64,000 nt of DNA. It comes from Piromyces finnis finn (lineage: Eukaryota; Fungi; Neocallimastigomycota). Positions within the stretch are counted from its first letter, which is position 1; each line of letters begins with the position of its first letter. This document shows positions 7,540 to 8,250 of this stretch, one piece after another. The notes under the pieces were generated by a model that searched no databases, was not told the DNA's origin, and worked only from the letters and a program-made list of their open reading frames with translations. The stretch is taken from positions 1 through 64,000 of the forward strand of contig MCFH01000069.1 of assembly GCA_002104945.1 (NCBI GenBank), read 5' to 3'. The position numbers and the translations under genes are program-made.

Positions 7540-7549
7540 AACTTACCTG
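7540..7549 (-). promoter_or_regulatory. Consensus 5' splice donor CAG|GTAAGT (second copy at 7916-7925)
   Basis: Plus aacttacctg reads caggtaagtt on minus; directly adjacent to the 12-mer; use as a donor is unproven. Confidence 0.45.
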
Positions 7550-8250
7550 AATATCAAACATTCAACTTATTCATCAAATACTTAATTCGATGAATAAAAT
7601 GTTTTTTAATCGCTCAGTACCATGAGCTTAATCCTAATAATTTTCCCTTAAAGACTAACCAAGCATCCATTGCGCAATGCTTGGATTTAATTCTTTCTAC
7701 TCTCTCAGTACCATGAGCATGAGTAGACCCCCTTGATAAACTCCATTATTAAATAAATGAAGGCACGTTCCTAAGAGGGCACCAAGCATCCATTGCGCAA
7801 TACTTGGATTTAATTCTTTCTACTCTCTCAGTACCATGAGCATGAGTAGACCCCCTTGAGAAACTACATTTATTAAATAAATGAAGGCACGTTCCCAAGA
7901 GGGAAATACTATACAAACTTACCTGAATATCAAACATTCACTTATTCATCAAATACTTAAATTTGATGAATAAAATGTTTTTTAATCGCTCAGTACCATG
8001 AGCTTAGTCCTAATAATTTTCCCTTGAAGACTAACCAAGCATCCATTGCGCAATGCTTGGATTTAATTCTTTCTACTCTCTCAGTACCATGAGCATGAGT
8101 AGACCCCCTTGAGAAATTACATTTATTAAATAAATGAAGGCACATTCCTAAGAGGGCACCAAGCATCCATTGCGCAATACTTGGATTTAATTCTTTCTAC
8201 TCTCTCAGTACCATGAGCATGAGTAGACCCCCTTGAGAAACTACATTTAT
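7540..8250 (-). ncRNA. Putative structured RNA of unknown class encoded by the array
   Basis: Several stems per unit; A-C mismatches on plus become G-U pairs on minus; possible GUGCC/GGUAC loop pairing. No family assigned. Confidence 0.4.

Follow-up and report, generated by a model that had tools for sequence, protein, structure and literature searches.

The LINE at the locus and its 5' unit

The DNA analysed here is a stretch of 64,000 nucleotides from Piromyces finnis, referred to as the window, and w denotes a coordinate in it. The interval w2217-7903 was found to be one full-length and very young LINE of this anaerobic gut fungus (family A), its sense strand being the minus strand. This copy is 5687 bp long, its limits being given by the stop of homology at w7903 and by target-site duplications. 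The poly(A) tail appears as a plus-strand run of 36 T (w2217-2252), identified with TRF and by sequence comparison of copies. A single ORF of 1507 aa (w2491-7014, minus strand), assigned from Pfam-type domain matches, has an N-terminal part of unknown nature, an APE endonuclease at about aa 241-452, a reverse transcriptase at aa 788-1043 and a weak zinc-knuckle-like C-terminal part. The RVT_1 match to the ORF has an E-value of 1e-35, and the Exo_endo_phos match of 31 bits lies above the cutoff of 24.5. The element is identified as a LINE by its ORF, which encodes both an endonuclease of the APE type and a reverse transcriptase, by its 3' poly(A) tail and by target-site duplications which vary between unrelated sites. 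The 5' UTR of 889 nt (w7015-7903, minus strand) lies between the ORF start and the 5' end set by the target-site duplications.

A 376-bp unit and a 123-bp sub-repeat, both described in the initial annotation, were recovered by a separate repeat search, while TRF did not list the 123/376-bp repeat. The 376-base unit is present in at least 393 places in the 56-Mb genome, with at least 40 copies being 97-100% identical. In 30 of the 30 fetched copies, homology extends from the ORF side up to w7903 (within a few bases) and then ends, and the flanks beyond w7903 are unrelated in most of these loci. Moreover, in full-length copies at unrelated loci (L032, L037, L040, L042, L044 and L046), target-site duplications of 9-14 bp enclose the sequence from the poly(T) run to w7903. 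Because these duplications stop exactly at w7903, the 376-base unit belongs to the element as its 5' end; the sense RNA of this young non-LTR retrotransposon, which is present in high copy number, starts with these 376 bases. The position of the 5' end is fixed to within about 1 nt, and the upstream sequence has nothing in common between copies.

The initial annotation had placed the units in a target array and had considered them as a possible multicopy ncRNA gene which the element targets; the target-site duplications at unrelated loci contradict both proposals. A pre-existing tandem array or multicopy ncRNA gene targeted by a site-specific LINE has a practically negligible probability: although the same 12-mer occurs at w2205, w7528 and w7904, so that an element ending at w7527 would also give a 12-bp duplication, the unit occurs exactly once in each of at least six copies located at unrelated unique loci, with duplications bounding poly(T) to w7903, homology ends there in every fetched locus, nested copies lie at many different positions of other copies, and the common flank which a site-specific LINE in a target array requires beyond its ends is replaced by unrelated sequence in most of the 30 loci.

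The apparent second unit (w7904-8256) is explained by nesting, since an older copy of the same family (copy T) has been split by the insertion of w2217-7903 with a duplication of 12 bp (w7904-7915, partner w2205-2216), recognized by sequence reading and copy comparison. The 5' piece of copy T (w7904-8256, minus strand) is 96.6% identical to w7528-7880 and holds an internal-type monomer (w8034-8156) and a 5'-truncated first monomer (w8158-8256), both on the minus strand. The remainder of copy T (w1-2216, minus strand), equivalent to w5333-7539 with 98.3% identity, has its ORF broken into pieces and is cut off by the start of the contig. At its truncated 5' end (w8253-8284), this older copy is capped by a 32-nt piece identical to the ORF segment w4097-4128, as could result from template switching of the reverse transcriptase. 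An internally deleted derivative of about 1.2 kb (L009/L034, G000:C170) was also observed, in which the equivalents of w7903-7251 and w2745-2217 are joined with a 10-bp overlap; judged from its sequence, it may be a non-autonomous copy retaining both ends.

Layout of the 123-nt module and its tandem copies

The 123-nt sub-repeat is a structured RNA module, having an outer stem from base 1, an adjoining hairpin and a third hairpin with an invariant loop. In the terminal copy, monomer 1 (w7781-7903, minus strand; G at module position 8), the 5' strand of the outer stem (w7892-7903) starts at the element's first base. According to the sequence and single-sequence folds this stem has 12 bp (w7903-7892 with w7862-7851) including two G-U pairs, and 3-4 of its pairs are changed on both sides in homologues. 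In the internal loop, w7886-7890 is a candidate pseudoknot strand, being complementary, with one G-U pair, to w7831-7835 of the hairpin 2 loop, and an inner A/U hairpin of 7 bp (w7867-7883) is predicted by the folds; the latter is found in type I modules and is missing from type II. Hairpin 2 (w7819-7850) has a two-part stem and a 6-nt loop (w7831-7836), with three pairs changed on both sides in comparison to the version at locus L081 and more in comparison to that at L048. Hairpin 3 (w7782-7807) has a 9-bp stem, which covaries by the counts given below, around an invariant 8-nt loop (w7791-7798). All these features are on the minus strand. A single extra G (w7780) joins monomer 1 to monomer 2 (w7657-7779, minus strand), an internal copy with A at position 8 and two uncompensated mismatches in its outer stem. 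The head region of the unit (w7528-7656, minus strand) contains a long A/U hairpin and another small hairpin (w7612-7627), in which the 6-nt loop recurs.

Much of this layout had been proposed earlier. Reading of w7781-7903 and the folds reproduced all five minus-strand pairings of the initial annotation, the small hairpin was found again in the head (w7627-7612) as it had stated, and the two between-copy variants it had named do read as G-U pairs when the minus strand is considered and as A-C on the plus strand. On the minus strand, monomer 1 folds with -43.4 kcal/mol (z = -5.1). For the whole 376 nt the comparison with shuffled sequence gave z = -5.4 on the minus and -7.1 on the plus strand; since both strands beat the shuffles, as inverted repeats must, folding energy alone cannot pick the strand.

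The number of tandem copies varies from 2 to 4, the window having 2 units, and copies with 3-4 units include three internal-type starts 124 nt apart on contigs C124 and C133. Tandem 5' units of variable number are thus found here as in L1-type monomers. Internal-type starts (A at position 8, n=212) always follow the linker G (212/212) and never flanking DNA, and all 212 internal monomers carry the change which breaks pair 8 of the outer stem. As internal-type starts never follow flanking DNA, no copy begins at an internal monomer; this absence is explained by descent, and the internal monomers do not define ends. For the terminal-type starts (n=261), the preceding base is other than G in 240 and G in 21. 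G before base 1 is no commoner than estimated for a G+C-poor genome, the expected frequency being an estimate and not taken from the base composition of this genome, and hence a copied cap is not indicated.

Some copies have additional partial monomers upstream. These were considered as products of reverse-transcriptase stutter, and this explanation was rejected; three such loci are nested insertions with target-site duplications. An insertion hot spot was observed in monomer 1 at sense positions of about 56-69 (hairpin 2; about w7835-7848), where 4 of the 30 sampled copies lie in an interval of about 15 nt (pairs L045/L029, L035/L011, L043/L025 and probably L004/L031). These are full-length copies with target-site duplications of 9-13 bp. 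Other pairs of starts show spacings of 69 nt and 32 nt. Of the sampled copies, about half are located in or beside another family copy, and the nested copies are found at many different positions.

Module versions in other LINEs and their covariation

A second LINE family (family B, loci L055-L060) is present in the same genome, its protein being 44% identical to that of family A. Its 5' end has one near-identical 123-nt module with the first 55 nt or so of the head, followed by an unrelated leader of 1.4 kb, and a target-site duplication is present at L058. Further, relatives of the ORF (50-72% identity) from other assemblies and from rumen metagenomes carry diverged versions of the module at their 5' ends. 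The L081 module scored 59-93 bits with custom covariance models, and L048 gave a weaker match. A shorter type II module without the inner hairpin is found at L047, L049 and L086, and type III at L051 and L067, whereas L091 is a mosaic. The loci L047 and L049 have one common module despite their diverged ORFs. Most of the 80 metagenome loci stop short of the element's 5' end; around the versions in metagenome and draft-assembly contigs no target-site duplications were found, and the exact 5' ends there were placed by the break of homology. Judged from these comparisons, the module behaves as a cassette which heads the two families with their 44%-identical proteins as well as related LINEs of other gut fungi. 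Its location at the exact 5' end of several families (A, B, L047, L049, L081, L048, L086 and L091) is that of a Pr77-like hallmark. Internal duplications were also observed in other versions: a unit of about 50 nt is repeated at L053:83-200, and hairpin 3 is repeated twice at L086 (about 236-310).

When folded separately, 11 of the 11 versions gave the same layout, in which a 5' C-run pairs with a later G-run and a hairpin with a 6-nt loop directly follows. Types I and II have an additional hairpin carrying the identical 8-nt loop. In every version no more than 2 nt separate the start of the outer stem from the exact 5' end. The covariance model R1 was built from three local copies and matched strongly to L081 only, while the model R2 matched L048, L091, L049, L086, L047 and L051 at the expected 5' positions with E-values of 3e-4 to 0.1. 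Because the R2 matches are weak and hairpin 2 of type II is poorly aligned, type I and hairpin 3 were counted separately.

In the alignment of the local copies with L081, which was fitted to the covariance model, 96.4% of the cells pair. Eight pairs are changed on both sides, in comparison to 2.2 +/- 1.2 in shuffles (0 of 500 reach 8) and 0-1 in slid controls; addition of L048 gave more such changes, which affect the outer stem and the two parts of hairpin 2. Hairpin 3 was aligned with MAFFT alone in seven distinct versions, and 7 of its 9 pairs were found to be changed on both sides around the invariant loop. Its cells are paired in 92%, as against 69% in shuffles and 30-49% in slid controls, and none of 500 shuffles reached the observed values. 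The helices of the module are thus kept through changes on both sides of pairs, above the controls and in about four independent lineages, on which the covariation rests. G-U cells outnumber A-C cells by 21 to 3 and 5 to 1 in the two counts, and pairing cells amount to 96% in the sense against 88% in the antisense direction, and to 92% against 86%. This excess of G-U over A-C indicates that the sense (minus) strand pairs better than the antisense. The both-side changes in homologues, together with this excess, bear out the selected minus-strand RNA structure which had been proposed initially.

The pseudoknot can form with 5-6 contiguous pairs in 8 of the 8 versions, the changes in it being one-sided only and the chance probability being 0.01-0.25 per sequence. 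All four variable positions in type I remain pairable. The sequences are hence consistent with this candidate pseudoknot. In the hairpin 2 loop of L086 the self-complementarity is lost and the intramolecular pairing is retained. In the type II versions the palindrome of hairpin 3 is imperfect, while the 8-nt loop and a stem are retained.

A perfect 9-mer resembling a 5' splice site was observed at the end of the 376-nt unit (w7542-7550, minus strand), and similar sites are found in the leaders of family B and L049. This motif suggests a possible intron in the 5' UTR; among the stored RNA-run contigs no spliced contig was seen.

Possible role of the module

On balance, we lean to the reading that the module is a self-contained (or host-factor-dependent) unit which defines and protects the 5' end of the element's RNA. 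Since the module is passed between families whatever proteins these encode, it probably acts alone or with host factors and not with the element's protein. As DNA, the module would be part of an internal promoter placing the start at base 1, with its tandem copies acting in the manner of L1 monomers. In the RNA, the compact fold would serve to protect the template's 5' end or to mark it. Such a role would be similar to that played by the Pr77 hallmark in trypanosomatid retroposons and by the ribozyme fold in R2. The RNA evidence, taken from runs stored as contigs of which four are of uncertain library type, consists of one metatranscriptome contig of 212 nt (w7584-7795), which is without strand or end information. 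A start in a C-run is unusual for a polymerase start site. The C-run at the start of the element fits processing better than a polymerase start, and this counts against the reading.

By analogy, the nearest counterpart of the module is the Pr77/L1TcRz hallmark of trypanosomatids (PMC3383444, PMC4035085), which is likewise short, has an exact 5' end and an RNA fold, travels with the element and is common to retroposon families of one host group which differ in other respects. As a 5' hallmark of several retroposon families, Pr77 combines promoter and ribozyme (PMC3383444). However, Pr77 is a proven promoter and HDV-like ribozyme, whereas both activities are putative for the gut-fungus module, which does not suit the HDV topology; no similarity of sequence or fold was seen between the two, and the gut-fungus module is often tandem. 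The HDV-like ribozyme of R2 (PMC3774820, PMC11331408) also has a stable fold from base 1 and, like the module, may protect the 5' end of the template. A stable 5' fold has been found to improve R2-templated insertion, possibly by limiting 5' degradation (PMC11331408). On the other hand, R2 is site-specific and co-transcribed with rRNA, whereas the gut-fungus element is dispersed; the module gives no HDV match in Rfam, and its 12-base helix leaves no room for a P2 strand. The twister-variant ribozymes of Schistosoma (PMC8501958) resemble the module as structured RNA which is associated, within one lineage, with the 5' region of LINEs, but the module matches no twister model and the conserved twister core is absent from it. 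In the gut-fungus literature, no description of the element or the module was found.

The module may be a self-cleaving ribozyme of an undescribed class, with its cleavage site immediately 5' of base 1. The RNA of the element would then be released from read-through transcripts, in the same way as R2 and L1Tc RNA is by HDV-like ribozymes. We regard this as rather unlikely. The position of the outer stem at or within 2 nt of the exact end in every version, the precision of that end to about 1 nt with no common sequence upstream, and the compact fold, maybe with a pseudoknot, would all suit such a ribozyme. The same is true for the first base of the element, which is C, with a preceding G in just 21 of 261 starts and no sign of a copied cap, for the independence of the cassette from the ORF, and for the internal monomers, of which none (0/212) forms a 5' end and all carry the change breaking pair 8 in the outer stem. 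However, the split into terminal and internal monomers is equally well explained by descent, and as tandem copies persist through hundreds of transposition cycles, the internal ones must be assumed to be inactive. Moreover, a scan with Rfam 15 using permissive filters and E-values up to 10, covering the window region and seven loci with other versions, gave only chance-level matches. The covariance models of hammerhead, twister, twister-sister, pistol, hatchet, hairpin, VS and HDV-like ribozymes did not match on the module, in agreement with the earlier remark that by eye it fits no hammerhead, HDV, twister, pistol or TPP consensus. A nested double pseudoknot of the HDV-like kind was also tried by fold inspection and hand threading. 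In such a fold P1 begins at base 1 and is followed by the P2 strand and P3, the 3' strand of P1 coming straight after P3 and the P2 partner after P4. This arrangement was rejected because bases 1-12 form one continuous helix with bases 42-53 and because the partner of the internal-loop strand lies inside the loop of the next hairpin and not after that hairpin; the topology is hence unlike that of HDV-like ribozymes.

The sub-repeats could also act only as promoter monomers at the DNA level, as in mouse L1, with the loops being transcription-factor sites and the RNA fold being incidental. Mouse L1 monomers are about 200 bp long, with start sites within each monomer, and the genomic copies begin at varied points. 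Like the module, they are tandem, variable in number and located at the 5' end, and in both cases 5' ends have been replaced in evolution. The extreme 5' location in tandem of variable number, the short invariant motifs and the swapping of the cassette between families in one host would agree with such a function. Moreover, the loop of hairpin 3 lies in a bZIP-like palindrome of 10 bp, which matches the C/EBP-type consensus. We nevertheless consider this explanation improbable. In contrast to mouse L1, all gut-fungus copies start with base 1 of the first monomer, and covariation at the RNA level is found in the unit. The stems change but stay paired while the loops are fixed, which is unexpected for the flanks of factor sites, and the G-U excess is strand-specific. 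Further, type II retains the 8-nt loop and a stem with an imperfect palindrome.

Quite improbable, in our view, is an xrRNA-like fold which stalls a 5'-3' exonuclease, so that transcripts started upstream would be trimmed to base 1 and then protected. With such a fold the 5'-most monomer alone would form an end, in agreement with the absence of internal ends (0/212), and no inactive internal copies would be needed. The pseudoknot-like contact beside the 5' end and the lack of a cap-derived G would also be accommodated, and 5' degradation has been suggested to limit template use (PMC11331408). This proposal requires transcription to start in flanking DNA, however, and neither a match in Rfam nor a fold similarity to known xrRNAs was seen.

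It is very improbable that the module is a docking or dimerisation site, at which the element's protein binds or two LINE RNAs pair via their loop cores in the manner of retroviral dimer initiation sites. Both conserved loops do hold a self-complementary core of 4 nt, and hairpins with fixed loops and free stems are typical of protein or RNA contact sites; but one module serves ORFs which are just 44% identical, and the hairpin 2 loop of L086 has kept its intramolecular pairing without self-complementarity.

The more specific proposal that the module belongs to a new RNA class which would make its own 5' end, either by self-cleavage or by exonuclease stalling, as a swappable cassette of gut-fungus LINEs, is put forward as a tentative possibility. 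To our knowledge, a means of making or keeping a complete 5' end is known for few non-LTR elements, namely the L1 promoters, the ribozymes of R2 and L1Tc and the twister variants of Schistosoma. An early-diverging fungal lineage has here its own compact 5' RNA module, with a conserved shape and invariant loops, which is exchanged between LINE families. If the module cuts or stalls an exonuclease, it would represent a functional RNA of a new class, which might be used as a 5' module in RNA-templated gene insertion. As the module is only about 120 nt long and is available in hundreds of near-identical copies with natural compensatory variants, assays of cleavage, exonuclease resistance, capping and promoter activity are straightforward.

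Other repeats were also observed in the window. A minus-strand ORF (w8963-9643), for which no Pfam match was obtained, contains a 51-bp tandem repeat of 4.9 copies with 98% identity (w9046-9295). TRF further detected identical small repeats lying about 4.7-4.9 kb apart (w31094-31124 and w35963-35993; w32984-33014 and w37672-37702), which points to duplication of a segment or to the presence of another element in two copies. A 53-bp tandem repeat of 3.7 copies, 98% identical, is located at w38661-38855.
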